From Perna viridis (taxonomy: Eukaryota), in assembly GCA_037379345.1 (NCBI GenBank), contig CM074521.1:25692704-25756703 (forward strand): 64,000 nt of DNA, given 5' to 3'. The position numbers were made by a program, and so were the translations under genes. The notes under the pieces were generated by a model. It was not told the origin of the DNA. It saw only the letters and a program-made list of their open reading frames with translations, and did no database searches. Positions 218-63,740 of the stretch are shown piece after piece. Position 1 is the first letter of the stretch. Each line of letters begins with the position of its first letter.

Positions 218-356
218 GACACACCTGTTAAACCTGGTGAGACCCTTGACTTGAAGAACATTGTTGCCAGCAAGGTGACAGTTCAAGTCAAACCAAAAGA
301 ACCCGGAAAACCAGCTGATGTAGACAAAATAACTTTAGAAATTTGCGAAAAACCTG
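218..356 (+). CDS. Exon A2 (139 nt), C-terminal part of domain A: DTPVKPGETLDLKNIVASKVTVQVKPKEPGKPADVDKITLEICEKP
   Basis: cattttag|GAC...CCTG|gtaagt; phase 0 to 1; too short for the ORF track; repeated in every A unit. Confidence 0.92.
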
Positions 357-9300: not shown

Positions 9301-12300
9301 GAAAAAGAATGACGAAGATGTTGGTACTGATGACATCAAGGAAGACGATGACAAGAACTTACCTCTTGATGAAAACGATGTTTTGACATTGGAACCAAGC
9401 AGTCCTTCAGAAGTTGACAGCATCAACGTAAATGGAGATAACATTGATGAAGTTCTTGTCACTGTTTATGATGAGGATGGAAATCCCACAGACATTGAGG
9501 TAGTGATATCACAGATTACTTTTAACAGGATATTTAAGGAACAATTGTACTTAATATGGTTACTGAATATTGTCTACAGAAAGAGTTGTTTGGTCCAGTT
9601 GATAAATGTTAACAAAATCTGTTTAACCTTCTATAGTTTTCCATAAATGATGAGGCAATGACTGTTTTATGATGATTTGATAAACATGGTAATATGATGA
9701 TATAAATATGTTTATTATTTTCATTTTAGGACACACCTGTTAAACCTGGTGAGACCCTTGACTTGAAGAACATTGTTGCCAGCAAGGTGACAGTTCAAGT
9801 CAAACCAAAAGAACCTGGAAAACCAGCTGATGTAGACAAAATAACTTTAGAAATTTGCGAAAAACCTGGTAAGTCTTGTTTCATTTACTCTAGGTTCTAT
9901 AGTTTGGTTATTAAATTTCTTTGTTGAAACATATGAGTTTAATTACAATTACGACACCGCAGACATACTGGCACGATGATTCACTGATATTTTTCTACTT
10001 GAAGCATCCTTAAAGATACCATCAATTCATTTTGTGTAATGTCAAAAAGGAATGGGGATGAAAGAACTGGGCTGCTTTAAGATTCCACTTAGCGTTAATA
10101 GAATAACACTACTGTCAGCTTTTAATGATGCATGCCTAACAATTTTACCAGTTCCAACATTTTCTCTTTTGTTTTGTATATTCGCTTTTTTCACTAGTGA
10201 CAACTGGTGTTACTACTGTGCCAACTGAAACCTCTCAGCCAGTACCAACTACCAAACCAACTCCCGAAATTACAACTACGGAAGTAAAAACTACAGGTAT
10301 GTTTGATAAAATGGGTATTGTGAATATCATTTCTGGAGGGAGCCTAAAGTATTAGTGATTACCGTTAGTTCAATAACTAGAATTATTCAATTTCAAGACC
10401 AACATTAGGAGCTACATCATTTTATGAAGGGTGGGACCTAAGAATTAATGTTTTGAAAAGCTTCAGCTACACATGTATGAAAAAGAAACGAAAGATTTTG
10501 ATTATAATTGAAACATTTAAGACATACTGGCATTATGTTTAAACAAAACGTTTTCAAGTTGAAGCATCATCAAAAATGCCATCAACTTTATTTTTAAAAA
10601 TTAACTTTTCGATTGTGTTAAGGAACTGGGTAACCTTTTAGATTCCATTTGGCCCTTATAATACAAGGAAAGTATTGGTATCTTTTAATCGTGTATTTTT
10701 ACACAGTTGCAGCATTGATCATTTGTCAGAAAAATTTACTTTTATCACTAGTGACAACTGGTGTTACCACTATGCCATCTGAAACTTCTCAGGCAGCACC
10801 AACTTCGAAGCCCGGACCTGAAATTACAACTCCAGGAGGAACAACAACAGGTGTGTTTTATAAAAGGAGTGTTCTGAATACCATTTCGGGAAGGTGCCTG
10901 ATTACCGTTAGTTCAATACAAAGAATTATACTAGTCCTTGAGCAGCAAAATATGCTACATCATTTTTGAGCGATCGGGCCTAAAAATTAATGTTGTGAAG
11001 TGCTTGGGCTACACATGTATGGAAAGAAAGTGATCGTTACATGTATCTACAGCATACATTGATGAGAAACGTTTGCACACCCTGAAAAGAATTGACTGAA
11101 ATAAGTGGAATTTCTGATGATTGTTAAAAAAAATAGTAATAATTTGTACAGTTTACACATGCAGAGAAATTAAGTTCTCATCTTTCCATATTATTTGTAC
11201 ATATAAATTATTTTAATCACATTTTGTAACTGAATCTCATTCTATGTTTTTTTTTAAAACGGTTATCAGTGTAATGAAGAATTACTGATGAATACACGAA
11301 GATAGGTTTGACCATGCCCCAGAAAGTATTTAGAGGATGAAAAATTCATTGTTTAATCCGGTCCACCTGGTCCATGCTCCCATTTTTTACTGGAGTCCGA
11401 GTTGCCCATTTGCTTTTGTTACTTTGTATGTATGAGATTAGTTACTTTATGTTCTTTTTTTGTGTATTTTTGTGTACCATGTCTGGTCTTTATACCCGGA
11501 TTACATTCTTTTGATTACCGCTATAACCTTGATTCCCTAGATTACTCTTTAATATACCTTAAGGTACAACTACAGAAGAATGTGAAAAGGTTGACATTAT
11601 GGATTCCATAAGTGTTGATTTAAGTGTGAAAAAGAATGACGAAGATGTTGGTACTGATGACATCAAGAATGAAGATGACAAGAACTTACCTCTTAATGAA
11701 AACGATGTTTTGACATTGGAACCAAGTAGTCCATCAGAAGTTGATAGCATCAACGTAAATGGAGATAACATTGAAGACGTCATTGTCACTGTTTATAATG
11801 AAGATGGAAACCCTACAGACATTGAGGTAGTGAGATCACAAATTTCGTTAGACAGGTTTTTTAAGAAATGTTTGTACTGATACAATATATTATATAACTT
11901 TATACACTTAATGAGGCAATTGTGTCGGTTTATAATAATGTTAATACACCCACTGCCTAGATATTTTAATCTGATTGAAATATTGAGTAATAAATGTTTT
12001 AGGATGATTTGAAAAACATGGTTATGTGCTAATATGAATATTTCTGTCATTTTAGGACACACCTGTTAAACCTGATGAGACGCTGGACTTGAAAAACATT
12101 GTTGCCAGCAAGGTAACAGTTCAAGTCACTCCAAAAGAACCTGGAAAACCAGCTGATGTAGACCAAGTGACTCTAGAAATTTGCGAAAAACCTGGTGAGT
12201 TTTGTCTCATTACATAAAGGGCCGTCTTATACTAATAGAAATCTTTGCTGAAAGAAAAGATTTTGACTATAATTTAAACACTTAAGAAATACTGGTATTA

Positions 12301-15300
12301 TGTTTGACAAAATTTTTTCAAATTGAAGCAGCATCAAATATGCCATCAACTCTTTTCTTTAAATATTACATTTACAATGGAGTTAAGGAACTGAATAAGC
12401 GTTTACTTTCCATTTGGCCTTTATAGTACAGGAAAAGTATTGGAATCTTTTAATCATGTATTCCTAACAATTTTACACAGTTGCAGCATTTTCTAATTTG
12501 TCTCAAAAATTTCCTTTTTTTCACTAGTGACAACTGGTGTTACTACTGTGCCATCTGAAACTTCTCAGGCAGCACCAACTTCGAAGCCCGGACCTGAAAT
12601 TACAACTCCAGGAGGAACAACAACAGGTGTGTTTGATAAAAGGGGTATTCGGAATACCATTTCGGGAAGGTGCCTGATTACCGTTAGTTAAATAAATAGA
12701 ATTATCCTAGTTCTTGGGCATCAAAGGAGCTACATCATTTTTTGAAAGATCGGGCCTAAATATTAATTTTTCAAGAATTTCTTATATTTTTTCATATATG
12801 ATAAAATTTTGTGCAGCTTACATATGCTGAAAAATCCTCTCTCATCTTTCCATATTGTTTGTACATGTATATTATTTATCACATTCTATAACTGCATTTC
12901 GTTGTATATTTTTTCAAACGGTTATTATTTGAATGAACAATTACTGATAAACACATGAACAAAGATTTGACCAACTTCGACAAAAAATATTAAGAATATC
13001 ACTAATTAAATTCTCAATCTTGAAAATACTTTAAGGTACAACTACGGAAGAATGTGAAAAGGTTGACATTATGGATTCAATAAGTGTTGATTTAAGTGTG
13101 AAAAAGAATGACGAAGATGTTGGTACTGATGACATCAAGGAAGACGATGACAAGAACTTACCTCTTGATGAAAACGATGTTTTGACATTGGAACCAAGCA
13201 GTCCTTCAGAAGTTGACAGCATCAACGTAAATGGAGATAACATTGATGAAGTTCTTGTCACTGTTTATGATGAGGATGGAAATCCCACAGACATTGAGGT
13301 AGTGATATCACAGATTACTTTTAACAGGATATTTAAGGAACAATTGTACTTAATATGGTTACTGAATATTGTCTACAGAAAGAGTTGTTTGGTCCAGTTG
13401 ATAAATGTTAACAAAATCTGTTTAACCTTCTATAGTTTTCCATAAATGATGGGGCAATGACTGTTTTATGATGATTTGATAAACATGGTAATATGATGAT
13501 ATAAATATGTTTATTTGTTTCATTTTAGGACACACCTGTTAAACCTGGTGAGACCCTTGACTTGAAGAACATTGTTGCCAGCAAGGTGACAGTTCAAGTC
13601 AAACCAAAAGAACCAGGAAAACCAGCTGATGTAGACAAAATAACTTTAGAAATTTGCGAAAAACCTGGTAAGTTTTGTCTCATTTACTCTAGGTTCTGTC
13701 GTTTGGTTATTAAATTTCTTTGTTGAAACATACGAGTTTGATTATAATTACGACACCGAAAACATATTGGCACGATGATTCACTGATATTTTTCTACTTG
13801 AAGCATCCTTAAAGATACCATCAATTCATTTTGTGTAATGTCAAAAAGGAATGGGGATGAAATAACTGGGCTGCTTTAAGATTCCACTTAGCGTTAATAG
13901 AATAACACTACTGTCAGCTTTTAATCATGCATGCCTAACAATTTTACCAGTTCCAACATTTTCTCTTTTGTTTTGTATATTCGCTTTTTTCACTAGTGAC
14001 AACTGGTGTTACTACTGTGCCAACTGAAACCTCTCAGCCAGTACCAACTACCAAACCAACTCCCGAAATTACAACTACGGAAGTAAAAACTACAGGTATG
14101 TTTGATAAAATGGGTATTGTGAATATCATTTCTGGAGGGAGCCTAAAGTATTAGTGATTACCGTTAGTTCAATAACTAGAATTATTCAATTTCAAGACCA
14201 ACATTAGGAGCTACATCATTTTATGAAGGGTGGGACCTAAGAATTAATGTTTTGAAAAGCTTCAGCTACACATGTATGAAAAAGAAACGAAAGATTTTGA
14301 TTATAATTGAAACATTTAAGACATACTGGCATTATGTTTAAACAAAACGTTTTCAAGTTGAAGCATCATCAAAAATGCCATCAACTTTATTTTTAAAAAT
14401 TAACTTTTCGATTGAGTTAAGGAACTGGGTAACCTTTTAGATTCCATTTGGCCCTTATAATACAAGGAAAGTATTGGTATCTTTTAATCGTGTATTTTTA
14501 CACAGTTGCAGCATTGATCATTTGTCAGAAAAATTTACTTTTATCACTAGTGACAACTGGTGTTACCACTATGCCATCTGAAACTTCTCAGGCAGCACCA
14601 ACTTCGAAGCCCGGACCTGAAATTACAACTCCAGGAGGAACAACAACAGGTGTGTTTTATAAAAGGAGTGTTCTGAATACCATTTCGGGAAGGTGCCTGA
14701 TTACCGTTAGTTCAATACAAAGAATTATACTAGTCCTTGAGCAGCAAAATATGCTACATCATTTTTGAGCGATCGGGCCTAAAAATTAATGTTGTGAAGT
14801 GCTTGGGCTACACATGTATGGAAAGAAAGTGATCGTTACATGTATCTACAGCATACATTGATGAGAAACGTTTGCACACCCTTAAAAGAATTGACTGAAA
14901 TAAGTGGAATTTCTGATGATTGTTAAAAAAAATAGTAATAATTTGTTCAGTTTACACATGCAGAGAAATTAAGTTCTCATCTTTCCATATTATTTGTACA
15001 TATAAATTATTTTAATCACATTTTGTAACTGAATCTCATTCTATGTTTTTTTTAAAACGATTATCAGTGTAATGAAGAATTACTGATGAATACACGAAGA
15101 TAGGTTTGACCATGCCCCAGAAAGTATTTAGAGGATGAAAAATTCATTGTTTAATCCGGTCCACCTGGTCCATGCTCCCATTTTTTACTGGAGTCCGAGT
15201 TGCCCATTTGCTTTTGTTACTTTGTATGTATGAGATTAGTTACTTTATGTTCTTTTTTTGTGTATTTTTGTGTACCATGTCTGGTCTTTATACCCGGATT

Positions 15301-48300: not shown

Positions 48301-51300
48301 TTTACACTGGTGTATTGTTCATTCAGGTTTTGAGTAGGCAGATTTCACTGTGCAAATTTTATGATTGGGGAGTTATACTCGATTTGTTTATGCATTTTAC
48401 AGATCAAAGTAAATGAACCTTCAAAACCTGTTAATCTTAATGGGGTAAAAGTTGAAGAGCTGACCATTACTTTTATTGCTGTAGACAAATCAAAAGACAT
48501 ATTAGTGAACAAGCTATCAGTTTCTGCATGTGTTAAACCTAGTAAGTAACAAGATACTGTGTATGGTATATGAATGTGCCCCAATTCAATTGTGCTAATG
48601 ACATTCTTCATAGATATAAGAAAAATGAATTTTTTTCCCAAAAGGATACAATTTGTTAGAGGTGATTTCTGTCTGAATTAAGTCAATGCCAATTTTCCCC
48701 TTGTTCCTTGCTTTTTCATATTATTTTTTGCTTTAATGATATCTACAACATGATACTGTAATTGTTCTTCATTTTCAAGGACTAAAGGTTTTTTTTACGT
48801 ATCACTTCCTGTTAATATCTAGTTTATCTGGTAAGATTTTAAATTTATATACTTCAAGTTGATCAGATTTGAAATATATCAAAAATGCTTTTGAACATTT
48901 TTAGAATGTGTGCAATTTATAAATGTATATTTTAGTTACAACGACAGCCCAACCTGAAACTTCTCAAGCAGCCCCAACAACTGAATCAGGACCTGCATTT
49001 ACATCAACTAGTGGTATGTAAGCTTCCTGATACAATGCATAGTCAGAAACTATATTTTCTTTACATTACTTTGATCTTAAAATTGTCATTTCAGGGTTTC
49101 CAATTCACATGACCAAAACACTATCCTGGTAAGCCTTATCCAAACTGAAGATCAAAAATGTATATCATAAAGAAAACACACTTACAGTCGTTATATAATA
49201 AATGCATGCAGCAACAATATTAAAGTGATAAGATGAAAAAAACAACAAAATCTTCATTGTCCATTAAGTTACCACTATCCTGACTGATGATAAAATTCAA
49301 TGCATTGCTGAGTGCTAAAAAGATAGCATGTAGTACATGTATGCAGTTCTTGAAATTACATTGATATCTCACAGATAATTCCGGTGAATAGTTAAACATG
49401 AAAGTTCCAAGGGTTTCAAAATTGATTAACTAGCATTATCAGGTGTGCTTCCAATGCTGATATTACAACCCTGCACTATTTTAGGTTTTCATATGCAGTC
49501 AAATGAGAAGCCTACGAAAATATGTTTATGCAAAATAGTCTTTATCATAAAATATAATATAAAATATAATAATTTCAAATATATAGGATTAAAATCATTG
49601 ATAGAAGATGACAATGAACTTTTGCACAGCTGTTTGAATATGATCGTATAACATTATTTTGCCGCTTGCAAAATCTTCACCAAAACAATTCTAATTTGAC
49701 AGGAATGCTTTTTGCATTTTATTTACACAGTACATGGTTTAAACAAGAGATCAATGATTGCGTATTAAGGATTGAATATATTTTGTATTTGTATTTAATT
49801 TTTATTTTTCCTAAGAGTTTCAACTTCTTCTACAACTGTTCAACCAATTCAGAAAAGAAACAGAAGTAAATGAATACTTGTTTTCTCTGTTAATCCAAAT
49901 TATCAAATTGTTTTACAAATTTTTGCTTAGTTTCAACTGCCACTACAACTGTTCCGCCAACTACATCGACTCCACCAGTTTCAACCCCTGAAACTTGTGA
50001 GGAGGTTGACAACATGGGACCATTATCAGAAAACATTAAAGAGGTGACAAAGAATGGTAATCCATTGAGTGAAGATGATAAGAACAAATTACAGCCTGGT
50101 GATGATAAGAAGTTAACTGTATCTAAGACTGACACTTTGTCGATTGTTATGGAAACACAAGAAGAAATTGATAAAATTGAAGTACTAGAAACAACCAATG
50201 TAAAGGAAGTAAACGTTATCCTGAAGGACGAAGATGGAACAACAGTTCTTGTAAGTATCAATAAATGTATTCATACTCTCGAAATTAATTATGTTTTTAA
50301 TTTCATTTTTTTTTTCATTTCTTTATTTCATGCATTATAACCAATCTTCAGTATAATTGCAAAATGCACACACTTTTATGATATTAGTTTCTATGTTACC
50401 GTGTTGGACTTTTTATCTTTTGTCGTAAAAAAAGGTTCACATGTCCAATGGAAAATGTTTAGATGTAACATGCATTAACTGTCCCAAGCAGCATTGGCGA
50501 TTTTCAAAATAAACAAGAGCTTTCATTCTTAATAATCGAATTTAAAATATTAAATCTTTTTGCCTTGTAGGATGAGACCATTTCACCAGAGGAAATTGTA
50601 AATGTTCCAAATAAGGTAGCTGGAAGTATCACTTTCACATTTGTACCAACAGACCCAAATGAAGATATGGAAGTAGGATCCGTTTCTGCTGAAGTTTGTG
50701 TTAAACCAGGTAAATGTTGTGATTAGATTTAAAGATATATTTAGAACACGTAAGATCTTTAATTCTGGTTCTTGTGTGATATAATTGTCGAGCAAACATG
50801 ATAATAGAGTAATTTGTGTGAAATGTCCTTGAATTGATAAACATTTGGATCTGTGGTATATTGAGAGAAATGTTAGATTAGGACTAGGCATTTTTATGGG
50901 AAATGAGGATCAAGAAAGATTTGAATTTGTAAATTGATTTTTTAAGATTCGTTTAAATTCTAACTTATATTTAACTTAATCAAAACAAGAAGTGTAAAGT
51001 TTTGTTATAAGTGATGAAATGTTTTGGTTGATAATATTATATTATCATCTAAATCTTACTTATTTTTGGAGTTGAGAAAAAAACTATTTGTGAAATTTTA
51101 ATTTTCAAAGGGAATCAGCCATATGACTATTGTTGAAACGGAAAATTTACACCATTTCACTGATGCTTTCCTTCCCTTAATTCAGTATCTCCCGAAATAT
51201 TGGACTACAAACAACCTTATTGTATTTAATTGTTTCATATGGAAACACAGAAACACACACAACGTCAAAAAAAGAGAATTAAACACATTAGTTGAGCAGA

Positions 51301-54300
51301 TGACTTGTATATTTTTTTGTTTTTAGCTGATATTATATATCAGTAGGTTATGTTTTGTTTGTTAATTGGAATCTTTATTAATTTTAAATCGAAATAGATC
51401 AGATTGATTAAGTCATTTTTCCCTAACAGTTACAACTGCCACTACAACTGTTCCACCAACTACATCGACTCCACCAGCTTCAACCCCTGAAACTTGTGAG
51501 GAGGTTGACAACATGGGACCATTATCAGAAAACATTAAAGAGGTGACAAAGAATGGTAATCCATTGAGTGAAGATGATAAGAACAAATTACAGCCTGGTG
51601 ATGATAAGAAGTTAACTGTATCTAAGACTGACACTTTGTCGATTGTTATGGAAACACAAGAAGAAGTTGATAAAATTGAAGTACTAGAAACAACCAATGT
51701 AAAGGAAGTAAACGTTATCCTGAAGGACGAAGATGGAACAACAGTTCTTGTAAGTATCAATAAATGTATTCATACTCTCGAAATTAATTATGTTTTTAAT
51801 TTCATTTTTTTTTCATTTCTTTATTTCATGCATTATAACCAATCTTCAGTATAATTGCAAAATGCACACACTTTTATGATATTAGTTTCTATGTTACCGT
51901 GTTGGACTTTTTATCTTTTGTCGTAAAAAAAGGTTCACATTTCCAATGGAAAATGTTTAGATGTAACATGCATTAACTGTCCCAAGCAGCATTGGCGATT
52001 TTCAAAATAAACAAGAGCTTTCATTCTTAATAATGGAATTTAAAATATTAAATCTTTTTGCCTTGTAGGATGAGACCATTTCACCAGAGGAAATTGTAAA
52101 TGTTCCAAATAAGGTAGCTGGAAGTATCACTTTCACATTTGTACCAACAGACCCAAATGAAGATATGGAAGTAGGATCCATTTCTGCTGAAGTTTGTGTT
52201 AAACCAGGTAAATGTTGTGATTAGATTTAAAGATATATTTAGAACACGTAAGATCTTTAATTCTGGTTCTTGTGTGATATAATTGTCGAGCAAACATGAT
52301 AATAGAGTAATTTGTGTGAAATGTCCTTGAATTGATAAACATTTGGATCTGTGGTATATTGAGAGAAATGTTAGATTAGGACTAGGCATTTTTATGGGAA
52401 ATGAGGATCAAGAAAGATTTGAATTTGTAAATTGATTTTTTAAGATTCGTTTAAATTCTAACTTATATTTAACTTAATCAAAACAAGAAGTGTAAAGTTT
52501 TGTTATAAGTGATGAAATGTTTTGGTTGATAATATTATATTATCATCTAAATCTTACTTATTTTTGGAGTTGAGAAAAAAAACTATTTGTGAAATTTTAA
52601 TTTTCAAAGGGAATCAGCCATATGACTATTGTTGAAACGGAAAATTTACACAATTTCACTGATGCTTTCCTTCCCTTAATTCAGTATCTCCCGAAATATT
52701 GGACTACAAACAACCTTATTGTATTTAATTGTTTCATATGGAAGCACAGAAACACACACAACGTCAAAAAAAGAGAATTAAACACATTAGTTGAGCAGAT
52801 GACTTGTATATTTTTTTGTTTTTAGCTGATATTATATATCAGTAGGTTATGTTTTGTTTGTTAATTGGAATCTTTATTAATTTTAAATCGAAATAGATCA
52901 GATTGATTAAGTCATTTTTCCCTAACAGTTACAACTGCCACTACAACTGTTCCACCAACTACATCGACTCCACCAGTTTCAACCCCTGAAACTTGTGAGG
53001 AGGTTGACAACATGGGACCATTATCAGAAAACATTAAAGAGGTGACAAAGAATGGTAATCCATTGAGTGAAGATGATAAGAACAAATTACAGCCTGGTGA
53101 TGATAAGAAGTTAACTGTATCTAAGACTGACACTTTGTCGATTGTTATGGAAACACAAGAAGAAGTTGATAAAATTGAAGTACTAGAAACAACCAATGTA
53201 AAGGAAGTAAACGTTATCCTGAAGGACGAAGATGGAACAACAGTTCTTGTAAGTATCAATAAATGTATTCATACTCTCGAAATTAATTATGTTTTTAATT
53301 TCATTTTTTTTTCATTTCTTTATTTCATGCATTATAACCAATCTTCAGTATAATTGCAAAATGCACACACTTTTATGATATTAGTTTCTATGTTACCGTG
53401 TTGGACTTTTTATCTTTTGTCGTAAAAAAAGGTTCACATTTCCAATGGAAAATGTTTAGATGTAACATGCATTAACTGTCCCAAGCAGCATTGGCGATTT
53501 TCAAAATAAACAAGAGCTTTCATTCTTAATAATGGAATTTAAAATATTAAATCTTTTTGCCTTGTAGGATGAGACCATTTCACCAGAGGAAATTGTAAAT
53601 GTTCCAAATAAGGTAGCTGGAAGTATCACTTTCACATTTGTACCAACAGACCCAAATGAAGATATGGAAGTAGGATCCATTTCTGCTGAAGTTTGTGTTA
53701 AACCAGGTAAATGTTGTGATTAGATTTAAAGATATATTTAGAACACGTAAGATCTTTAATTCTGGTTCTTGTGTGATGTAATAGTCGAGCAAACATGATA
53801 ATAGAGTAATTTGTGTGAAATGTCCTTGAATTGATAAACATTTGGATCTGTGGTATATTGAGAGAAATGTTAGATTAGGACTAGGCATTTTTATGGGAAA
53901 TGAGGATCAAGAAAGATTTGAATTTGTAAATTGATTTTTTTAAGATTCGTTTAAATTCTAACTTATATTTAACTTAATCAAAACAAGAAGTGTAAAGTTT
54001 TGTTATAAGTGATGAAATGTTTTGGTTGATAATATTATATTATCATCTAAATCTTACTTATTTTTGGAGTTGAGAAAAAAAACTATTTGTGAAATTTTAA
54101 TTTTCAAAGGGAATCAGCCATATGACTATTGTTGAAACGGAAAATTTACACAATTTCACTGATGCTTTCCTTCCCTTAATTCAGTATCTCCCGAAATATT
54201 GGACTACAAACAACCTTATTGTATTTAATTGTTTCATATGGAAACACAGAAACACACACAACGTCAAAAAAAGAGAATTAAACACATTAGTTGAGCAGAT

Positions 54301-57300
54301 GACTTGTATATTTTTTTGTTTTTAGCTGATATTATATATCAGTAGGTTATGTTTTGTTTGTTAATTGGAATCTTTATTAATTTTAAATCGAAATAGATCA
54401 GATTGATTAAGTCATTTTTCCCTAACAGTTACAACTGCCACTACAACTGTTCCACCAACTACATCGACTCCACCAGCTTCAACCCCTGAAACTTGTGAGG
54501 AGGTTGACAACATGGGACCATTATCAGAAAACATTAAAGAGGTGACAAAGAATGGTAATCCATTGAGTGAAGATGATAAGAACAAATTACAGCCTGGTGA
54601 TGATAAGAAGTTAACTGTATCTAAGACTGACACTTTGTCGATTGTTATGGAAACACAAGAAGAAGTTGATAAAATTGAAGTACTAGAAACAACCAATGTA
54701 AAGGAAGTAAACGTTATCCTGAAGGACGAAGATGGAACAACAGTTCTTGTAAGTATCAATAAATGTATTCATACTCTCGAAATTAATTATGTTTTTAATT
54801 TCATTTTTTTTTCATTTCTTTATTTCATGCATTATAACCAATCTTCAGTATAATTGCAAAATGCACACACTTTTATGATATTAGTTTCTATGTTACCGTG
54901 TTGGACTTTTTATCTTTTGTCGTAAAAAAAGGTTCACATTTCCAATGGAAAATGTTTAGATGTAACATGCATTAACTGTCCCAAGCAGCATTGGCGATTT
55001 TCAAAATAAACAAGAGCTTTCATTCTTAATAATGGAATTTAAAATATTAAATCTTTTTGCCTTGTAGGATGAGACCATTTCACCAGAGGAAATTGTAAAT
55101 GTTCCAAATAAGGTAGCTGGAAGTATCACTTTCACATTTGTACCAACAGACCCAAATGAAGATATGGAAGTAGGATCCATTTCTGCTGAAGTTTGTGTTA
55201 AACCAGGTAAATGTTGTGATTAGATTTAAAGATATATTTAGAACACGTAAGATCTTTAATTCTGGTTCTTGTGTGATGTAATAGTCGAGCAAACATGATA
55301 ATAGAGTAATTTGTGTGAAATGTCCTTGAATTGATAAACATTTGGATCTGTGGTATATTGAGAGAAATGTTAGATTAGGACTAGGCATTTTTATGGGAAA
55401 TGAGGATCAAGAAAGATTTGAATTTGTAAATTGATTTTTTTAAGATTCGTTTAAATTCTAATTTATATTTAACTTAATCAAAACAAGAAGTGTAAAGTTT
55501 TGTTATAAGTGATGAAATGTTTTGGTTGATAATATTATATTATCATCTAAATCTTACTTATTTTTGGAGTTGAGAAAAAAAACTATTTGTGAAATTTTAA
55601 TTTTCAAAGGGAATCAGCCATATGACTATTGTTGAAACGGAAAATTTACACAATTTCACTGATGCTTTCCTTCCCTTAATTCAGTATCTCCCGAAATATT
55701 GGACTACAAACAACCTTATTGTATTTAATTGTTTCATATGGAAACACAGAAACACACACAACGTCAAAAAAAGAGAATTAAACACATTAGTTGAGCAGAT
55801 GACTTGTATATTTTTTTGTTTTTAGCTGATATTATATATCAGTAGGTTATGTTTTGTTTGTTAATTGGAATCTTTATTAATTTTAAATCGAAATAGATCA
55901 GATTGATTAAGTCATTTTTCCCTAACAGTTACAACTGCCACTACAACTGTTCCACCAACTACATCGACTCCACCAGCTTCAACCCCTGAAACTTGTGAGG
56001 AGGTTGACAACATGGGACCATTATCAGAAAACATTAAAGAGGTGACAAAGAATGGTAATCCATTGAGTGAAGATGATAAGAACAAATTACAGCCTGGTGA
56101 TGATAAGAAGTTAACTGTATCTAAGACTGACACTTTGTCGATTGTTATGGAAACACAAGAAGAAGTTGATAAAATTGAAGTACTAGAAACAACCAATGTA
56201 AAGGAAGTAAACGTTATCCTGAAGGACGAAGATGGAACAACAGTTCTTGTAAGTATCAATAAATGTATTCATACTCTCGAAATTAATTATGTTTTTAATT
56301 TCATTTTTTTTTCATTTCTTTATTTCATGCATTATAACCAATCTTCAGTATAATTGCAAAATGCACACACTTTTATGATATTAGTTTCTATGTTACCGTG
56401 TTGGACTTTTTATCTTTTGTCGTAAAAAAAGGTTCACATTTCCAATGGAAAATGTTTAGATGTAACATGCATTAACTGTCCCAAGCAGCATTGGCGATTT
56501 TCAAAATAAACAAGAGCTTTCATTCTTAATAATGGAATTTAAAATATTAAATCTTTTTGCCTTGTAGGATGAGACCATTTCACCAGAGGAAATTGTAAAT
56601 GTTCCAAATAAGGTAGCTGGAAGTATCACTTTCACATTTGTACCAACAGACCCAAATGAAGATATGGAAGTAGGATCCATTTCTGCTGAAGTTTGTGTTA
56701 AACCAGGTAAATGTTGTGATTAGATTTAAAGATATATTTAGAACACGTAAGATCTTTAATTCTGGTTCTTGTGTGATATAATTATCGAGCAAACATGATA
56801 ATAGAGTAATTTGTGTGAAATGTCCTTGAATTGATAAACATTTGGATCTGTGGTATATTGAGAGAAATGTTAGATTAGGACTAGGCATTTTTATGGGAAA
56901 TGAGGATCAAGAAAGATTTGAATTTGTAAATTGATTTTTTAAGATTCGTTTAAATTCTAACTTATATTTAACTTAATCAAAACAAGAAATGTAAAGTTTT
57001 GTTATAAGTGATGAAATGTTTTGGTTGATAATATTATATTATCATCTAAATCTTACTTATTTTTGGAGTTGAGAAAAAAACTATTTGTGAAATTTTAATT
57101 TTCAAAGGGAATCAGCCATATGACTATTGTTGAAACGGAAAATTTACACAATTTCACTGATGCTTTCCTTCCCTTAATTCAGTATCTCCCGAAATATTGG
57201 ACTACGAACAACCTTATTGTATTTAATTGTTTCATATGGAAACACAGAAACACACACAACGTCAAAAAAAGAGAATTAAACACATTAGTTGAGCAGATGA

Positions 57301-60300
57301 CTTGTATATTTTTTTGTTTTTAGCTGATATTATATATCAGTAGGTTATGTTTTGTTTGTTAATTGGAATCTTTATTAATTTTAAATCGAAATAGATCAGA
57401 TTGATTAAGTCATTTTTCCCTAACAGTTACAACTGCCACTACAACTGTTCCACCAACTACATCGACTCCACCAGCTTCAACCCCTGAAACTTGTGAGGAG
57501 GTTGACAACATGGGACCATTATCAGAAAACATTAAAGAGGTGACAAAGAATGGTAATCCATTGAGTGAAGATGATAAGAACAAATTACAGCCTGGTGATG
57601 ATAAGAAGTTAACTGTATCTAAGACTGACACTTTGTCGATTGTTATGGAAACACAAGAAGAAGTTGATAAAATTGAAGTACTAGAAACAACCAATGTAAA
57701 GGAAGTAAACGTTATCCTGAAGGACGAAGATGGAACAACAGTTCTTGTAAGTATCAATAAATGTATTCATACTCTCGAAATTAATTATGTTTTTAATTTC
57801 ATTTTTTTTTCATTTCTTTATTTCATGCATTATAACCAATCTTCAGTATAATTGCAAAATGCACACACTTTTATGATATTAGTTTCTATGTTACCGTGTT
57901 GGACTTTTTATCTTTTGTCGTAAAAAAAGGTTCACATTTCCAATGGAAAATGTTTAGATGTAACATGCATTAACTGTCCCAAGCAGCATTGGCGATTTTC
58001 AAAATAAACAAGAGCTTTCATTCTTAATAATCGAATTTAAAATATTAAATCTTTTTGCCTTGTAGGATGAGACCATTTCACCAGAGGAAATTGTAAATGT
58101 TCCAAATAAGGTAGCTGGAAGTATCACTTTCACATTTGTACCAACAGACCCAAATGAAGATATGGAAGTAGGATCCATTTCTGCTGAAGTTTGTGTTAAA
58201 CCAGGTAAATGTTGTGATTAGATTTAAAGATATATTTAGAACACGTAAGATCTTTAATTCTGGTTCTTGTGTGATATAATTGTCGAGCAAACATGATAAT
58301 AGAGTAATTTGTGTGAAATGTCCTTGAATTGATAAACATTTGGATCTGTGGTATATTGAGAGAAATGTTAGATTAGGACTAGGCATTTTTATGGGAAATG
58401 AGGATCAAGAAAGATTTGAATTTGTAAATTGATTTTTTAAGATTCGTTTAAATTCTAACTTATATTTAACTTAATCAAAACAAGAAGTGTAAAGTTTTGT
58501 TATAAGTGATGAAATGTTTTGGTTGATAATATTATATTATCATCTAAATCTTACTTATTTTTGGAGTTGAGAAAAAAACTATTTGTGAAATTTTAATTTT
58601 CAAAGGGAATCAGCCATATGACTATTGTTGAAACGGAAAATTTACACAATTTCACTGATGCTTTCCTTCCCTTAATTCAGTATCTCCCGAAATATTGGAC
58701 TACAAACAACCTTATTGTATTTAATTGTTTCATATGGAAACACAGAAACACACACAACGTCAAAAAAAGAGAATTAAACACATTAGTTGAGCAGATGACT
58801 TGTATATTTTTTTGTTTTTAGCTGATATTATATATCAGTAGGTTATGTTTTGTTTGTTAATTGGAATCTTTATTAATTTTAAATCGAAATAGATCAGATT
58901 GATTAAGTCATTTTTCCCTAACAGTTACAACTGCCACTACAACTGTTCCACCAACTACATCGACTCCACCAGTTTCAACCCCTGAAACTTGTGAGGAGGT
59001 TGACAACATGGGACCATTATCAGAAAACATTAAAGAGGTGACAAAGAATGGTAATCCATTGAGTGAAGATGATAAGAACAAATTACAGCCTGGTGATGAT
59101 AAGAAGTTAACTGTATCTAAGACTGACACTTTGTCGATTGTTATGGAAACACAAGAAGAAGTTGATAAAATTGAAGTACTAGAAACAACCAATGTAAAGG
59201 AAGTAAACGTTATCCTGAAGGACGATGATGGAACAACAGTTCTTGTAAGTATCAATAAATGTATTCATACTCTCGAAATTAATTATGTTTTTAATTTCAT
59301 TTTTTTTTCATTTCTTTATTTCATGCATTATAACCAATCTTCAGTATAATTGCAAAATGCACACACTTTTATGATATTAGTTTCTATGTTACCGTGTTGG
59401 ACTTTTTATCTTTTGTCGTAAAAAAAGGTTCACATTTCCAATGGAAAATGTTTAGATGTAACATGCATTAACTGTCCCAAGCAGCATTGGCGATTTTCAA
59501 AATAAACAAGAGCTTTCATTCTTAATAATCGAATTTAAAATATTAAATCTTTTTGCCTTGTAGGATGAGACCATTTCACCAGAGGAAATTGTAAATGTTC
59601 CAAATAAGGTAGCTGGAAGTATCACTTTCACATTTGTACCAACAGACCCAAATGAAGATATGGAAGTAGGATCCATTTCTGCTGAAGTTTGTGTTAAACC
59701 AGGTAAATGTTGTGATTAGATTTAAAGATATATTTAGAACACGTAAGATCTTTAATTCTGGTTCTTGTGTGATGTAATAGTCGAGCAAACATGATAATAG
59801 AGTAATTTGTGTGAAATGTCCTTGAATTGATAAACATTTGGATCTGTGGTATATTGAGAGAAATGTTAGATTAGGACTAGGCATTTTTATGGGAAATGAG
59901 GATCAAGAAAGATTTGAATTTGTAAATTGATTTTTTTAAGATTCGTTTAAATTCTAACTTATATTTAACTTAATCAAAACAAGAAGTGTAAAGTTTTGTT
60001 ATAAGTGATGAAATGTTTTGGTTGATAATATTATATCATCATCTAAATCTTACTTATTTTTGGAGTTGAGAAAAAAACTATTTGTGAAATTTTAATTTTC
60101 AAAGGGAATCAGCCATATGACTATTGTTGAAACGGAAAATTTACACAATTTCACTGATGCTTTCCTTCCCTTAATTCAGTATCTCCCGAAATATTGGACT
60201 ACAAACAACCTTATTGTATTTAATTGTTTCATATGGAAACACAGAAACACACACAACGTCAAAAAAAGAGAATTAAACACATTAGTTGAGCAGATGACTT

Positions 60301-63300
60301 GTATATTTTTTTGTTTTTAGCTGATATTATATATCAGTAGGTTATGTTTTGTTTGTTAATTGGAATCTTTATTAATTTTAAATCGAAATAGATCAGATTG
60401 ATTAAGTCATTTTTCCCTAACAGTTACAACTGCCACTACAACTGTTCCACCAACTACATCGACTCCACCAGCTTCAACCCCTGAAACTTGTGAGGAGGTT
60501 GACAACATGGGACCATTATCAGAAAACATTAAAGAGGTGACAAAGAATGGTAATCCATTGAGTGAAGATGATAAGAACAAATTACAGCCTGGTGATGATA
60601 AGAAGTTAACTGTATCTAAGACTGACACTTTGTCGATTGTTATGGAAACACAAGAAGAAGTTGATAAAATTGAAGTACTAGAAACAACCAATGTAAAGGA
60701 AGTAAACGTTATCCTGAAGGACGAAGATGGAACAACAGTTCTTGTAAGTATCAATAAATGTATTCATACTCTCGAAATTAATTATGTTTTTAATTTCATT
60801 TTTTTTTCATTTCTTTATTTCATGCATTATAACCAATCTTCAGTATAATTGCAAAATGCACACACTTTTATGATATTAGTTTCTATGTTACCGTGTTGGA
60901 CTTTTTATCTTTTGTCGTAAAAAAAGGTTCACATTTCCAATGGAAAATGTTTAGATGTAACATGCATTAACTGTCCCAAGCAGCATTGGCGATTTTCAAA
61001 ATAAACAAGAGCTTTCATTCTTAATAATCGAATTTAAAATATTAAATCTTTTTGCCTTGTAGGATGAGACCATTTCACCAGAGGAAATTGTAAATGTTCC
61101 AAATAAGGTAGCTGGAAGTATCACTTTCACATTTGTACCAACAGACCCAAATGAAGATATGGAAGTAGGATCCATTTCTGCTGAAGTTTGTGTTAAACCA
61201 GGTAAATGTTGTGATTAGATTTAAAGATATATTTAGAACACGTAAGATCTTTAATTCTGGTTCTTGTGTGATGTAATAGTCGAGCAAACATGATAATAGA
61301 GTAATTTGTGTGAAATGTCCTTGAATTGATAAACATTTGGATCTGTGGTATATTGAGAGAAATGTTAGATTAGGACTAGGCATTTTTATGGGAAATGAGG
61401 ATCAAGAAAGATTTGAATTTGTAAATTGATTTTTTTAAGATTCGTTTAAATTCTAACTTATATTTAACTTAATCAAAACAAGAAGTGTAAAGTTTTGTTA
61501 TAAGTGATGAAATGTTTTGGTTGATAATATTATATCATCATCTAAATCTTACTTATTTTTGGAGTTGAGAAAAAAACTATTTGTGAAATTTTAATTTTCA
61601 AAGGGAATCAGCCATATGACTATTGTTGAAACGGAAAATTTACACAATTTCACTGATGCTTTCCTTCCCTTAATTCAGTATCTCCCGAAATATTGGACTA
61701 CGAACAACCTTATTGTATTTAATTGTTTCATATGGAAACACAGAAACACACACAACGTCAAAAAAAGAGAATTAAACACATTAGTTGAGCAGATGACTTG
61801 TATATTTTTTTGTTTTTAGCTGATATTATATATCAGTAGGTTATGTTTTGTTTGTTAATTGGAATCTTTATTAATTTTAAATCGAAATAGATCAGATTGA
61901 TTAAGTCATTTTTCCCTAACAGTTACAACTGCCACTACAACTGTTCCACCAACTACATCGACTCCACCAGCTTCAACCCCTGAAACTTGTGAGGAGGTTG
62001 ACAACATGGGACCATTATCAGAAAACATTAAAGAGGTGACAAAGAATGGTAATCCATTGAGTGAAGATGATAAGAACAAATTACAGCCTGGTGATGATAA
62101 GAAGTTAACTGTATCTAAGACTGACACTTTGTCGATTGTTATGGAAACACAAGAAGAAGTTGATAAAATTGAAGTACTAGAAACAACCAATGTAAAGGAA
62201 GTAAACGTTATCCTGAAGGACGAAGATGGAACAACAGTTCTTGTAAGTATCAATAAATGTATTCATACTCTCGAAATTAATTATGTTTTTAATTTCATTT
62301 TTTTTTCATTTCTTTATTTCATGCATTATAACCAATCTTCAGTATAATTGCAAAATGCACACACTTTTATGATATTAGTTTCTATGTTACCGTGTTGGAC
62401 TTTTTATCTTTTGTCGTAAAAAAAGGTTCACATTTCCAATGGAAAATGTTTAGATGTAACATGCATTAACTGTCCCAAGCAGCATTGGCGATTTTCAAAA
62501 TAAACAAGAGCTTTCATTCTTAATAATCGAATTTAAAATATTAAATCTTTTTGCCTTGTAGGATGAGACCATTTCACCAGAGGAAATTGTAAATGTTCCA
62601 AATAAGGTAGCTGGAAGTATCACTTTCACATTTGTACCAACAGACCCAAATGAAGATATGGAAGTAGGATCCATTTCTGCTGAAGTTTGTGTTAAACCAG
62701 GTAAATGTTGTGATTAGATTTAAAGATATATTTAGAACACGTAAGATCTTTAATTCTGGTTCTTGTGTGATATAATTGTCGAGCAAACATGATAATAGAG
62801 TAATTTGTGTGAAATGTCCTTGAATTGATAAACATTTGGATCTGTGGTATATTGAGAGAAATGTTAGATTAGGACTAGGCATTTTTATGGGAAATGAGGA
62901 TCAAGAAAGATTTGAATTTGTAAATTGATTTTTTAAGATTCGTTTAAATTCTAACTTATATTTAACTTAATCAAAACAAGAAGTGTAAAGTTTTGTTATA
63001 AGTGATGAAATGTTTTGGTTGATAATATTATATTATCATCTAAATCTTACTTATTTTTGGAGTTGAGAAAAAAACTATTTGTGAAATTTTAATTTTCAAA
63101 GGGAATCAGCCATATGACTATTGTTGAAACGGAAAATTTACACAATTTCACTGATGCTTTCCTTCCCTTAATTCAGTATCTCCCGAAATATTGGACTACG
63201 AACAACCTTATTGTATTTAATTGTTTCATATGGAAACACAGAAACACACACAACGTCAAAAAAAGAGAATTAAACACATTAGTTGAGCAGATGACTTGTA

Positions 63301-63740
63301 TATTTTTTTGTTTTTAGCTGATATTATATATCAGTAGGTTATGTTTTGTTTGTTAATTGGAATCTTTATTAATTTTAAATCGAAATAGATCAGATTGATT
63401 AAGTCATTTTTCCCTAACAGTTACAACTGCCACTACAACTGTTCCACCAACTACATCGACTCCACCTGCTTCAACCCCTGAAACTTGTGAGGAGGTTGAC
63501 AACATGGGACCATTATCAGAAAACATTAAAGAGGTGACAAAGAATGGTAATCCATTGAGTGAAGATGATAAGAACAAATTACAGCCTGGTGATGATAAGA
63601 AGTTAACTGTATCTAAGACTGACACTTTGTCGATTGTTATGGAAACACAAGAAGAAGTTGATAAAATTGAAGTACTAGAAACAACCAATGTAAAGGAAGT
63701 AAACGTTATTCTGAAGGACGAAGATGGAACAACAGTTCTT
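218..63740 (+). CDS. Internal part (98 exons, ~6,037 aa, no start or stop in window) of a giant mucin-like extracellular protein: alternating Thr/Pro/Ser-rich linkers and two-Cys, discoidin(F5/8 type C)-like domains
   Basis: Hand-spliced GT..AG exons with consistent phases (domain exon 1: phase 1 to 0; domain exon 2: phase 0 to 1; linker exons: 1 to 1). The summed exon length of 18,111 nt is divisible by 3, and I saw no stop or frameshift in the exons, whereas introns carry indels. The product name is inferred from composition and motif pattern, not from a database search. Confidence 0.88.
686..784 (+). CDS. Exon A3 (99 nt), mucin-type linker VTTGVTTVPTETSQPVPTTKPTPEITTTRGTTA
   Basis: ctttcactag|TG...GCAG|gtatct; symmetric phase 1-1; Thr/Pro-rich. 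Confidence 0.9.
1306..1568 (+). CDS. Exon A1 (263 nt), N-terminal acidic part of domain A: GTTTEECEKVDIMDSISVD...YDEDGNPTDIE
   Basis: ttaccttaag|GT...ATTGAG|gtagtg; phase 1 to 0. The Met in the ORF track is internal, and the ORF tail (VVISQITF...) is intron read-through that varies between copies. Confidence 0.92.
1799..1937 (+). CDS. Exon A2 of the first complete unit (NIVT variant)
   Basis: cattttag|GAC...CCTG|gtaagt. Confidence 0.9.
2268..2366 (+). CDS. Exon A3 of the first complete unit
   Basis: tcactag|TG...GCAG|gtatct. Confidence 0.9.
10752..10850 (+). CDS. Extra linker exon A3' VTTGVTTMPSETSQAAPTSKPGPEITTPGGTTT (second copy 14551-14649)
   Basis: tcactag|TG...ACAG|gtgtgt; 99 nt; phase 1-1; follows linker exon 10198-10296 with no domain in between. 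Confidence 0.85.
11336..11550. mobile_element. Truncated dispersed repeat inserted just upstream of the A1 splice acceptor (duplicate at ~15134-15348)
   Basis: Absent from standard A units. 11358-11550 aligns by eye with 48060-48251 (ccggt.cacctggtc.atgctcc...tggagtccgagttgc.catttgcttttg...gattaccgctataac...gattactcttt). Confidence 0.8.
11564..12626 (+). CDS. Diverged A unit: exons 11564-11826, 12056-12194, 12528-12626 (duplicate 15362-15624, 15854-15992, 16325-16423)
   Basis: Same exon lengths and phases as a standard A unit, with substitutions (KNEDD, LNEN, IEDVIV, YNED, KPDET, QVTPK, DQVT). The introns are clearly more diverged than the exons. Confidence 0.88.
18418..31347 (+). repeat. 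Higher-order repeat of four A units (~6,334 bp), two copies plus the start of a third
   Basis: Diagnostic variants recur at 6,333-6,334 bp: synonymous CCA at units 18453/24787/31120; aaaattagt (DKISIV) at 20897/27231; cccccgaaaa at ~23131/~29465; a 1-nt intron deletion in units 20038/21622/23206 and 26372/27956/29540. Confidence 0.85.
32636..32734 (+). CDS. Terminal linker exon of array A: VTAGVTTVPTETSQAAPTSKPGPEITTPGGTTT
   Basis: ctttcactag|TG...ACAG|gtgtgt; 99 nt; follows linker exon 32047-32145. Confidence 0.85.
33116..33420 (+). CDS. Exon B1: linker + N-terminal part of the single-copy discoidin/F5/8C-like domain (NPCLSEEGMQNP...IKIGLGG...NVGTFKISLVKENG...YENGK)
   Basis: caattttag|TT...GGAAAG|gtttgt; 305 nt; phase 1 to 0. 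Confidence 0.87.
34009..34159. repeat. Intronic tandem duplication, ~72 bp identical core, period 79 bp
   Basis: catcagtaacctctgcatgatatagtcattcaatgaaaagtacagttatttgagtataacttaaaattcagt at 34009 and 34088. Confidence 0.92.
34428..34563 (+). CDS. Exon B2: VFSGKEALVFDENTFAKKLVVQILSKENPDSNYQLDVDLRACFKQ
   Basis: tttttacag|GTG...CAAG|gtactt; 136 nt; phase 0 to 1. Confidence 0.87.
34539..34742 (+). repeat. 4 x 51 bp degenerate tandem repeat straddling the exon B2 donor site
   Basis: Units begin gatttgagagcg (34539), gatttaagatcc (34590), gatttaagagcc (34641) and gatataagagcc (34692); each ends tttctgaa. Confidence 0.88.
35905..35982. repeat. A-rich simple repeat (AAAAC/AAAACC)n
   Basis: aaaaccaaacagaaaaccaaaaccaaaaacaaaacaaacataaaaataaaaacaaaacaaaacaaaaaa. 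Confidence 0.8.
37062..37163 (+). CDS. Linker exon VTSLTETTKPISTTQPGSTSTEEVTTVETTTQIP
   Basis: ttatttcacag|TT...CCAA|gtgtgt; 102 nt; phase 1-1; missing from the ORF track. Confidence 0.82.
37247..37677 (+). mobile_element. SINE-like element with a tRNA-like Pol III A/B box region, bounded by a 22-bp direct repeat
   Basis: A box TGGCCGAGTGG (37522-37532) and B box GAGTTCGAGTCC (37587-37598); gaatttttcagacctttctata at 37247-37268 and 37656-37677. Confidence 0.7.
37910..38030 (+). mobile_element. Degenerate fragment resembling the 5' end of bivalve Helentron-associated (HINE/DINE-1-like) non-autonomous elements
   Basis: tttttagctc..gtgagct...tcatcacttagcgtctgtcttcgttggtcgtgttaactttt: T-run start, short agctc/gagct inverted repeat, then a degenerate gtc-type microsatellite. 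Family assignment is from recall only. Confidence 0.45.
38459..43779 (+). CDS. Three type-C modules: exons 38459-38793 + 39169-39304; 40553-40890 + 41265-41400; 42656-42993 + 43644-43779
   Basis: cag|CA...AACACA|gtaaga (phase 1 to 0) and tttcag|GTATCA...A|gtaaga (136 nt, phase 0 to 1); TTEKC(A/T)KVEVMDPAEYG...VYTDENGKQNT / VSGEPFEQIELNFVSVKSLTVSLDRKDPNLNVKLDQISVVVCKKP. Confidence 0.9.
38512..43290 (+). repeat. Array C: ~2.1 kb exon-intron cassette, about 2.3-3 copies
   Basis: MDPAEYG ORFs at 40654 and 42757 (offset 2103) and the same sequence at ~38557; introns are homologous with scattered substitutions and indels. Confidence 0.92.
43291..43601. mobile_element. ~310 bp insertion specific to the third C cassette, beginning with a ~150 bp fold-back
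   Basis: Copies 1 and 2 read gtacgatttctacagtatt|gatgattg; here 311 bp intervene, with tatt on both sides. aattggcaatgataaaaattttg (43295-43317) is the exact reverse complement of 43419-43441, and imperfect pairing continues inward. Confidence 0.8.
44054..44821 (+). CDS. Module D (older paralog of C): exons 44054-44406 and 44686-44821
   Basis: ttacag|CA...AAGAAA|gtaaga; ttctag|ATT...CCAG|gtatgg; TTERCAKVEIMDPEEYG... / ISGEVSERIDMNFVTVKSLTIFIVRENPEEKVSLNQVSVVVCKKP. Confidence 0.88.
44890..45107. mobile_element. MITE (~210 bp) with ~32 bp terminal inverted repeats and TTAA target duplication, Kolobok-like termini
   Basis: TTAA|agaggtagacctagggtaagggacacaactctt ... aagagttatgtcccttacctaggtctacctcc|TTAA. 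Purine-purine...pyrimidine-pyrimidine ends with TTAA fit Kolobok rather than piggyBac. Confidence 0.85.
45460..45549 (+). CDS. Linker exon ATSSIATTTTTGVSATTVPTTGTPVITTEK
   Basis: tcattgtag|CA...GAAAAAT|gtaaga; 90 nt; phase 1-1. Confidence 0.8.
45755..46864 (+). CDS. Module E: exons 45755-46107 and 46729-46864
   Basis: cttgtag|CA...ATTACT|gtaagt; ttttag|GTT...CCAG|gtaaag; TTEKCSKVDIMDSQKFG... / VSGKPSEKIDLNFVSVQSLKISLVPVSAEVEVSVDKVSVIVCVKP. Confidence 0.88.
47302..48541 (+). CDS. Module F: exons 47302-47660 and 48403-48541
   Basis: cttccag|CA...AAAACA|gtatgt; ttttacag|ATC...CCTA|gtaagt; TTEPCAQANIMNEDEYG... / IKVNEPSKPVNLNGVKVEELTITFIAVDKSKDILVNKLSVSACVKP. Confidence 0.87.
48011..48251. mobile_element. 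Longer copy of the dispersed repeat also found at 11358-11550 and ~15156-15348
   Basis: atgagcaactcggccggtgtttctagaaaagcagaggacgcttaccctaccggtgcacctggtc...gattactcttt. It resembles, from recall, an abundant Mytilus short interspersed repeat; the family is not determined. Confidence 0.78.
48936..49013 (+). CDS. Linker exon ITTTAQPETSQAAPTTESGPAFTSTS
   Basis: tattttag|TT...AGTG|gtatgt; 78 nt; phase 1-1; shares ETSQAAPT..GP with the A3' linker exons. Confidence 0.8.
49931..50250 (+). CDS. Exon G1: VSTATTTVPPTTSTPPVSTPETCEEVDNMGPLSEN...ILKDEDGTTVL (repeats at 51430, 52929, 54429, 55929, 57427, 58925, 60424, 61923, 63421)
   Basis: ttttgcttag or cctaacag|TT...GTTCTT|gtaagt; 320 nt; phase 1 to 0. 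Confidence 0.92.
50571..50709 (+). CDS. Exon G2: DETISPEEIVNVPNKVAGSITFTFVPTDPNEDMEVGS(V/I)SAEVCVKP (repeats at 52069, 53568, 55068, 56568, 58066, 59564, 61063, 62562)
   Basis: gccttgtag|GAT...CCAG|gtaaat; 139 nt; phase 0 to 1. Confidence 0.92.

Follow-up and report, generated by a model that had tools for sequence, protein, structure and literature searches.

Does a stretch of the Perna viridis genome that is scattered with short open reading frames (ORFs) contain many small genes or the exons of one very large gene, and what would such a gene encode? The stretch in question, hereafter called the window, comprises 64,000 nucleotides (G000:C11:25692704-25756703, + strand) of a chromosome-scale contig, C11, in an assembly of 723 Mb in 46 contigs with ~33% GC. 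The initial annotation of the window proposed that the separate short ORFs are spliced into a single reading frame of 98 exons and more than 6,000 amino acids (aa), in which 37 small domains with two Cys each, of seven types (A to G), alternate with mucin-like linkers rich in Pro, Thr and Ser (PTS). We refer to these domains as beads. Our analysis suggests, with reasonable confidence, that the window covers the middle of one very large + strand gene, whose product would be a mucin-like extracellular polymer of ~15,000 residues with derived discoidin domains as its beads. Coordinates below are positions in the window unless marked C11, and negative values lie upstream of the window's start.

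One reading frame across the window

We searched for chains of exons using dynamic programming. The program took into account AG/GT sites, open frames and whether phases were compatible, and it scored codons by log-odds from a table trained on a few obvious ORF pieces. This independent search arrived at the same chain that had been proposed: 98 GT..AG exons over positions 218-63740 of the + strand, joined into 6054 codons with 0 stops, and including all five junctions singled out in the initial annotation (356/686, 784/1306, 1568/1799, 32734/33116 and 49013/49931). In control runs of the same program, the chain on the + strand scored 2094 (98 exons), as compared to 23.8 for the − strand (19 exons, 518 aa) and 0.07 for locally shuffled sequence.

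The encoded 6054 aa contain 73 Cys, two per bead, and zero Trp. There are 36 bead starts, which give 37 domains when a trailing closing exon at position 218 is added; the proposed number of domains, the seven types and the alternation with linkers are thus supported by the chain, the bead starts and the alignments. Every cassette boundary is in phase 1 and each bead is split internally by a phase-0 intron, and the cassettes sum exactly (139+99+263 = 501 nt for the A unit, 320+139 = 459 nt for the G unit). The layout that was said to be common to all beads also holds when the seven types are aligned: an invariant Cys, a Met six residues on, a strand-turn element of the form N-x-x-x-V-x-V-x-Y-x-D-E-x-G, and a closing exon of 136 or 139 nt that ends in C-x-K-P, or in the variant C-F-K-Q in type B. 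The linker exons encode 43% Thr and 15% Pro, a composition that is typical of mucin PTS regions and agrees with the mucin-like character attributed to them.

RNA evidence for the predicted junctions

As the RNA test region we used the unique stretch 44000-49999 (6 kb), and the data were two stranded RNA-seq runs as raw reads and two further runs as Logan contigs. All eight junctions predicted in this region were seen as GT..AG joints in RNA: 44406/44686 (present in four runs), 44821/45460, 45549/45755, 46107/46729, 46864/47302, 47660/48403, 48541/48936 and 49013/49931. The last of these is among the five junctions proposed beforehand, and the other seven are additional. One RNA contig of 1747 nt holds the exons from 44054 to 48541 in order, and its loose 5' end corresponds to the end of exon 43644-43779, i.e., it contains the join 43779/44054 that leads from a type C bead to bead D. 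Loose read ends at 49930 carry the end of a G closing exon joined to the start of a G first exon, and G cassettes are therefore spliced to one another. First mates map to the − strand, which for most stranded libraries means that the RNA has + sense. Introns in this region have no RNA coverage save for two high-copy interspersed repeats.

Arrays and features of the window

Comparing the window to itself revealed three genomic tandem arrays with unique stretches between them. The first (1-32334) consists of ~1585-bp units with exons of 139, 99 and 263 nt, the second (38438-43290) of 2.3 copies of a 2094-bp unit, and the third (49929-64000) of more than 9.4 copies of a 1499-bp unit with exons of 320 and 139 nt; these copy numbers are as in the assembly and depend on it. 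The features of the window are as follows.

218-32145, +: array of A-type cassettes, with 20 closing exons and 19 complete beads (closing exon 139 nt, PTS linker 99 nt, bead first exon 263 nt)
1306-1568, +: first exon of a representative A bead, phase 1 on entry and phase 0 at its end, with the opening Cys (TTEEC) and most beta-strands
1799-1937, +: representative A closing exon (139 nt), starting in phase 0 and ending in ...TLEICEKP plus 1 nt
2268-2366, +: representative PTS linker exon (99 nt), phase 1-1, from the exon chain
32636-32734, +: additional linker exon that separates the A array from bead B, from the exon chain
33116-34563, +: single bead B, with first exon 33116-33420 and closing exon 34428-34563 (136 nt, ending in C-F-K-Q)
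37062-37163, +: isolated PTS linker exon within a long, repeat-rich intron region, from the exon chain
38459-43779, +: three C-type beads, with first exons of 335 or 338 nt that carry a linker at the 5' end, and closing exons of 136 nt
44054-44821, +: bead D (exons 44054-44406 and 44686-44821), from the chain and RNA
45460-45549, +: PTS linker exon, from the chain and RNA joints 44821/45460 and 45549/45755
45755-46864, +: bead E (exons 45755-46107 and 46729-46864), from the chain and RNA
47302-48541, +: bead F (exons 47302-47660 and 48403-48541), from the chain and RNA
48936-49013, +: PTS linker exon between bead F and the G array, from the chain and RNA joints 48541/48936 and 49013/49931
49931-63740, +: G-type cassettes in 1499-bp units that continue past the window, with 10 first exons of 320 nt, each combining linker and bead, and 9 closing exons of 139 nt

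Units of the A array are mutually 96-99.9% identical, introns included, and C11 carries 35 near-identical copies of the A closing exon. When repeat units are compared, diversity is two to five times lower in exons than in introns (0.012 versus 0.025 in the A array, 0.012 versus 0.062 in the G array), which points to selection on the coding sequence even though the amplification is recent. Two variants occur within the A array. Positions 9730-17325 form a higher-order arrangement of two 3.8-kb super-units, each of which contains an intron insertion and one additional, diverged linker exon, and the units at 17326-31577 form a sub-family (TTTAEC, GPDD).

At bead B, the chain program took a shorter in-phase donor at 34518. 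A 51-nt tandem repeat with 3.5 copies (34539-34717) begins inside the 3' end of this bead's closing exon and repeats the last codons together with the donor, so that there are several in-phase candidate donors. An exact 79-nt duplication (34008-34159) lies 400 nt upstream of this repeat.

Relatives of the beads

We built a profile from seven bead first exons and searched it against 1.84 billion representative proteins. It matched CAC5405735.1 / A0A6J8DCF6 of Mytilus coruscus, an 'unnamed protein product' of 2998 aa with 13 beads (E 1e-134), an ORF of 2106 aa with 10 beads, and CAF0742849.1, a protein of 475 aa from the rotifer Adineta steineri (E 8e-8). Each of the 13 M. coruscus repeats aligns to the A bead first exon with 36% identity (E 9e-13). 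A search for homologous proteins, whose length filter hides longer and shorter relatives, returned nothing other than the window's ORF itself, the M. coruscus protein and rotifer proteins.

The M. coruscus protein is built from the same two-Cys bead (PEEC...ELIACEQ), with a PTS linker of ~100 aa after every copy. However, it is annotated as a fragment, in which a single bead type occurs and terminal domains are lacking, and we found no name, function or literature for it. Since this unnamed fragment is the sole annotated relative in public protein sets, the gene appears to be uncharacterized and poorly annotated, as the initial annotation had suspected of a gene so easily fragmented. The A. 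steineri protein, and also an ORF in a rotifer-like assembly (L027:1001-7321, ENA ERZ26165376), share the bead family and the alternation of beads with PTS, but they differ in having an extra Cys inside the bead and in being much shorter. The ORF in L027 holds ten beads and their linkers in one intronless frame of 2106 codons, and thus lacks the phase-0 intron. In another eukaryotic contig (L028, ENA ERZ21784934) there is a phase-0 intron of ~81 nt (GTAAGA to TTTCAG) at the same position of the bead, which was read through by the gene caller.

The beads as probable divergent discoidin domains

All seven bead types have one Cys at each end. The beads measure 125-129 aa from Cys to Cys, have a pI of 4.05-4.72 and lack Trp; the amplified A and G beads consist of 23-27% Asp+Glu and have only 1-2 Tyr or Phe in ~125 residues. 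Database queries were made with single exons, and exons were joined only to count stops and to determine length and composition.

The fold was modelled on the rotifer protein CAF0742849.1, using an input alignment that included the window's exons. In the AlphaFold (AF2) model, the two rotifer beads have pLDDT values of 85-96 and the disordered linkers are below 35. With Foldseek, the best 40 or more PDB matches to this model are tandem discoidin domains, namely the C1-C2 domains of factor V/VIII, neuropilin b1b2, DDR1 and CBM32, with E-values down to 2.7e-7. VIA-align superimposes the rotifer bead on whole discoidin domains with Z 10.3-11.8 and rmsd 2.7-3.3 A over 116-129 residues. Neighbours in the ESM Atlas carry F5_F8_type_C, which we regard as a lead only. 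Because the bead of the rotifer homologue matches complete discoidin domains, we are highly confident that the beads of the window are predicted correctly as strongly derived mini-discoidin domains, i.e., members of the F5/8 type C class with a galactose-binding-like beta-barrel, and that they do not represent a new fold.

Several observations weigh against this assignment. Ten bead exons, the first exon of bead B among them, have no match in Pfam, including PF00754, at E<=10, and PF00754 is likewise not matched by the whole spliced relatives P0002 and P0020 (the rotifer homologue). PDB sequence profiles gave no match to the alignments of either bead exon, and comparing the bead exon profiles A1/A2 to six FA58C domains of the same genome with hhalign gave a probability of ~0.1%. 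In addition, the fold evidence comes from the rotifer homologue, which is linked to the window by the exon-1 profile (hhalign probability 70%, E 4e-5); the link between the closing exon and the rotifer bead is correctly placed but weak (P 0.045). A comparison to NCBIfam gave no meaningful match.

Other candidate relationships were rejected. For the whole M. coruscus protein, matches to the Pfam families Malectin and Dip arise from adding up 13 weak repeats, of which no single one is significant, and matches of the exon-1 profile to bacterial 'gliding motility' and like proteins are partial and Cys-free. Combining rotifer beads and mussel exons in one alignment put the closing exons in the wrong place, and this alignment was set aside.

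Compared to F5/8 type C domains (FA58C, CBM32; e.g., neuropilin b1, factor VIII C2 and Dictyostelium discoidin I), the bead as modelled in the rotifer shares the eight-stranded, distorted jelly-roll beta-barrel over the whole domain (Z ~11, ~2.9 A, ~122 residues), and the beads too have one Cys at each domain end. A disulfide that connects the N- and C-terminal ends is typical of discoidin domains, and by analogy the two Cys probably close each bead in this way. However, the beads are shorter (125-129 aa, versus ~150 aa for the aligned PDB domains), Trp-free, poor in aromatic residues and strongly acidic, and they fail the Pfam and profile-profile tests described above.

Do the beads bind sugars?

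Given a discoidin fold, the beads might be working carbohydrate-binding modules that resemble lectins or CBM32. The protein would then act as a multivalent lectin-mucin and trap glycans, whether microbial, algal or those of the protein itself, for instance to capture and sort particles on gills and palps, or to form a gel by itself through glycan-lectin contacts. The discoidin/CBM32 fold is a common sugar-binding scaffold, and the bead types diverge most in their N-terminal loop region, both of which would fit this idea. The nearest published analogy is found in the adhesive footprints of sea stars, where FA58C/galactose-binding proteins occur alongside mucin-like glycoproteins and a glycan-lectin interaction has been proposed (PMC9382459). 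However, the absence of Trp, the scarcity of Tyr and Phe in the A and G beads and their high content of Asp and Glu are atypical of sites that stack against sugars, and the beads do not match FA58C profiles. We therefore regard a lectin-mucin as an unlikely explanation, although it fares better than the other alternatives considered below. It is unlikely that the beads are classical sugar-stacking lectins.

Instead, since an aromatic-poor, polyanionic surface makes sugar stacking unlikely, we favour a role in reversible cross-linking. The acidic, Trp-free beads would form compact, protease-resistant and negatively charged nodes, and they might be cross-linked reversibly through Ca2+ or charge or through weak contacts between beads and glycans. 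The CysD domains of vertebrate mucins, which break up the PTS regions of MUC2 and MUC5AC, are a functional analogue of the beads, and the role proposed here would be analogous to theirs. We tentatively assign the role of cross-linking node to the beads, while judging it slightly less than an even bet.

The predicted gene beyond the window

We analyzed 80 kb upstream and 90 kb downstream of the window. In accordance with the expectation that both ends of the gene lie outside the window, the in-frame chain extends in both directions. Upstream there are 16 further A cassettes, reaching back to -25461 without a stop. Downstream, the G array reaches 70195 and is followed by a pure PTS region (70582-101552; 35 exons, 2,556 aa, 41% Thr and 15% Ser), a second G-type array (104224-125120) and further PTS. 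For the 3' part, a second chain run was trained on Cys-rich ORFs. This chain stays in frame through exons that match TSP_1, TIL and VWC into a final exon, with a stop at 139755. The combined in-frame model has ~235 exons encoding 14,865 aa and ~70 beads, and occupies ~165 kb (C11 ~25.667-25.832 Mb).

Four ORF stretches match the Pfam family TSP_1, three of them above the cut-off of 21.6 bits (41.5, 43.2 and 28.3 bits) and one below it (17.3 bits). Two TIL matches and one VWC match in Pfam lie near the 3' end, and are chained in frame with the beads. The last exon scores 18.6 bits for Cys_knot in Pfam, under the cut-off of 24. A profile of this exon and three paralogues, however, matches sclerostin (1.3e-5), norrin (5.8e-5) and the C-terminal cystine knot (CTCK) of VWF (7e-4), and these CTCK exons have invariant CxGxC and CxCC motifs. 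Among the domains for which the initial annotation had suggested examining the flanks, a cystine knot is therefore present at the 3' end, together with TSP1, TIL and VWC, while VWD and a signal peptide were not found.

Upstream of the A array lies another discoidin-like domain, which we call Z (-30118 to -29841 and -27876 to -27729). It is less derived than the beads and has the same 1-0-1 intron phases. Z scores 15.4 bits for PF00754, as compared to a cut-off of 28.2, and its matches to FA58C domains by hhalign are weak (P ~0.01) and collinear. Both Z and bead B retain FA58C-like motifs and the same intron position, and judged by eye from its sequence, bead B is the most discoidin-like bead of the window.

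Several points weigh against the model of a giant secreted mucin. Neither a signal peptide nor a first exon was found; the candidates from the scans, at -34310, -31301 and -40812, are weak and ambiguous in phase. A genome-wide search with PF00094 found no VWD between C11:20.05 and 26.26 Mb, and VWD, LDLa and EMI modules were not seen in the span of the gene. Also, the links from A to B to C, and those from the G array through the central PTS region and the second G array to the C-terminus, are based on frame and phase only. More generally, frame, phase, splice consensus and homology are the basis for the junctions within the A array, for the links between A, B and C and for whatever lies beyond 50 kb.

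This raises the question of whether the window instead contains several adjacent genes or alternative transcripts, one for each array, and not one product of 15,000 aa. RNA bridges only 43779-49999, the introns at 34563-38459 are long and repeat-rich, and paralogous bead genes do adjoin on the same chromosome. Against this idea, 14,865 codons in 235 exons have no stop and have compatible phases throughout, an RNA contig runs through four different types of bead and on to where the G array begins, and the chain required neither a start-type nor a terminal exon anywhere. We consider separate genes to be highly improbable, and a single gene is very probably the correct description.

Possible organization of the polymer

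If the single-gene model is correct, its product would be a secreted, mucin-like polymer. Densely O-glycosylated PTS linkers would act as stiff, hydrated rods between the beads, and the cystine knot might dimerize chains tail to tail, by analogy with VWF and gel-forming mucins. Because there are no VWD assemblies in or near the gene, end-to-end polymerization like that of MUC2 is not expected. The polymer would gain length by unequal crossing-over between near-identical exon-intron cassettes, an assumption suggested by the symmetric phases and by units that are near-identical with their introns included.

An acidic protein of the shell, byssus or periostracum matrix, whose polyanionic beads bind Ca2+ or mineral, might seem an alternative to mucus given the bead pI of 4.0-4.7 and the runs of Asp and Glu, and mucin-like acidic proteins are indeed known in mollusc shell matrices. 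We nevertheless view this alternative as having very little chance of being correct, as Gly/Ala/Ser-rich and DOPA-type motifs are absent, soluble gel or fibre glycoproteins typically have such a central PTS region (~2,556 aa) and such a CTCK/TSP1/TIL tail, and a text search of a Perna viridis byssus proteome paper met no mention of mucin or discoidin.

Comparison to known glycoproteins

With MUC2, MUC5AC and MUC5B, the mussel gene shares long PTS regions that are broken by small Cys-containing globular domains, and a C-terminal VWC domain and cystine knot. Unlike these mucins, it lacks N-terminal VWD-C8-TIL assemblies and has TSP1 repeats in its tail. Its discoidin-fold beads have 2 Cys, as compared to 10 in CysD, and its PTS sequence is spread over dozens of small phase-1 exons, whereas vertebrate mucins have it in one large exon. 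SCO-spondin and SCO-spondin-like proteins have a similar tail of TSP1 repeats, TIL, VWC and CTCK, as well as a discoidin-type domain. However, the mussel gene has no VWD, LDLa or EMI, and ~90% of it consists of bead/PTS cassettes, which are absent from SCO-spondin. Searches of the literature found no description of mucins with discoidin beads. A mucin-like CTCK glycoprotein with derived discoidin domains as globular interruptions, and without VWD assemblies, belongs to a known class of proteins but is an unusual and undescribed form of it.

If the model is right, the product is among the longest predicted animal proteins, the gene is a clean example of a coding macrosatellite in which exon-intron cassettes build a biopolymer, and the beads are a derived discoidin family that current domain libraries overlook. 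Because the libraries miss the family, annotations of molluscs and rotifers contain its genes in fragments or without a name; for genome annotation, the splice-verified cassettes could seed a profile with which to find it. For research on mucus and biomaterials, the model offers a testable alternative to gel designs based on CysD and VWD.

A broader proposal is that the two-Cys bead is a domain family that has so far gone unrecognized and that Pfam lacks, namely an acidic mini-discoidin without Trp that mussels and rotifers have in common, and that a cluster of giant paralogues on one chromosome, of which the ~15,000-aa protein is the largest, forms the structural network of mytilid mucus, with the beads as cross-links switchable by Ca2+ or charge. 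As a whole, this proposal is speculative, and we doubt that it will hold in full. If true, it would constitute a gel-forming principle unlike the VWD-based polymerization of vertebrate mucins.

Paralogues and repeats

Within the genome, the exon-1 profile has matches on C11 only, namely in the giant gene, in the next gene downstream and in eight G-like beads at 26.231-26.245 Mb (− strand). The next gene downstream (~140700-154000) has a Z-like discoidin domain at ~149300 and 151190, followed by a bead at ~153100, and its 5' region is collinear with the giant gene from ~-43400. It looks like a tandem duplicate of the giant gene. Paralogues of the CTCK exon are located at C11 25.909 Mb (+; exon 25909242-25909550), at C11 25.960 Mb (−) and on C7.

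Another paralogue (C11:26216001-26276000, −) has a VWD domain by Pfam in its upstream part, and stretches that resemble C8, TIL and LDLa by eye. These modules are followed by one novel bead, by the eight G-like beads with PTS linkers and by more LDLa-like stretches. The paralogue at 26.22-26.27 Mb thus has beads in a protein with an N-terminus of the SCO-spondin or mucin type.

The two interspersed repeats in introns of the RNA test region (44800-45200 and 48000-48400) have very high depth in the RNA and contig runs, on both strands and in many variants. ORF-like pieces similar to them occur at 11341-11511, 15139-15309 and 37463-37732, and the repeats share a recurring pseudo-ORF motif, ...PYRCTWSMLPVFSGVRVAHLLLLLCMYDFSYFMFF.... 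They probably belong to an abundant transposon or SINE-like family of this genome.

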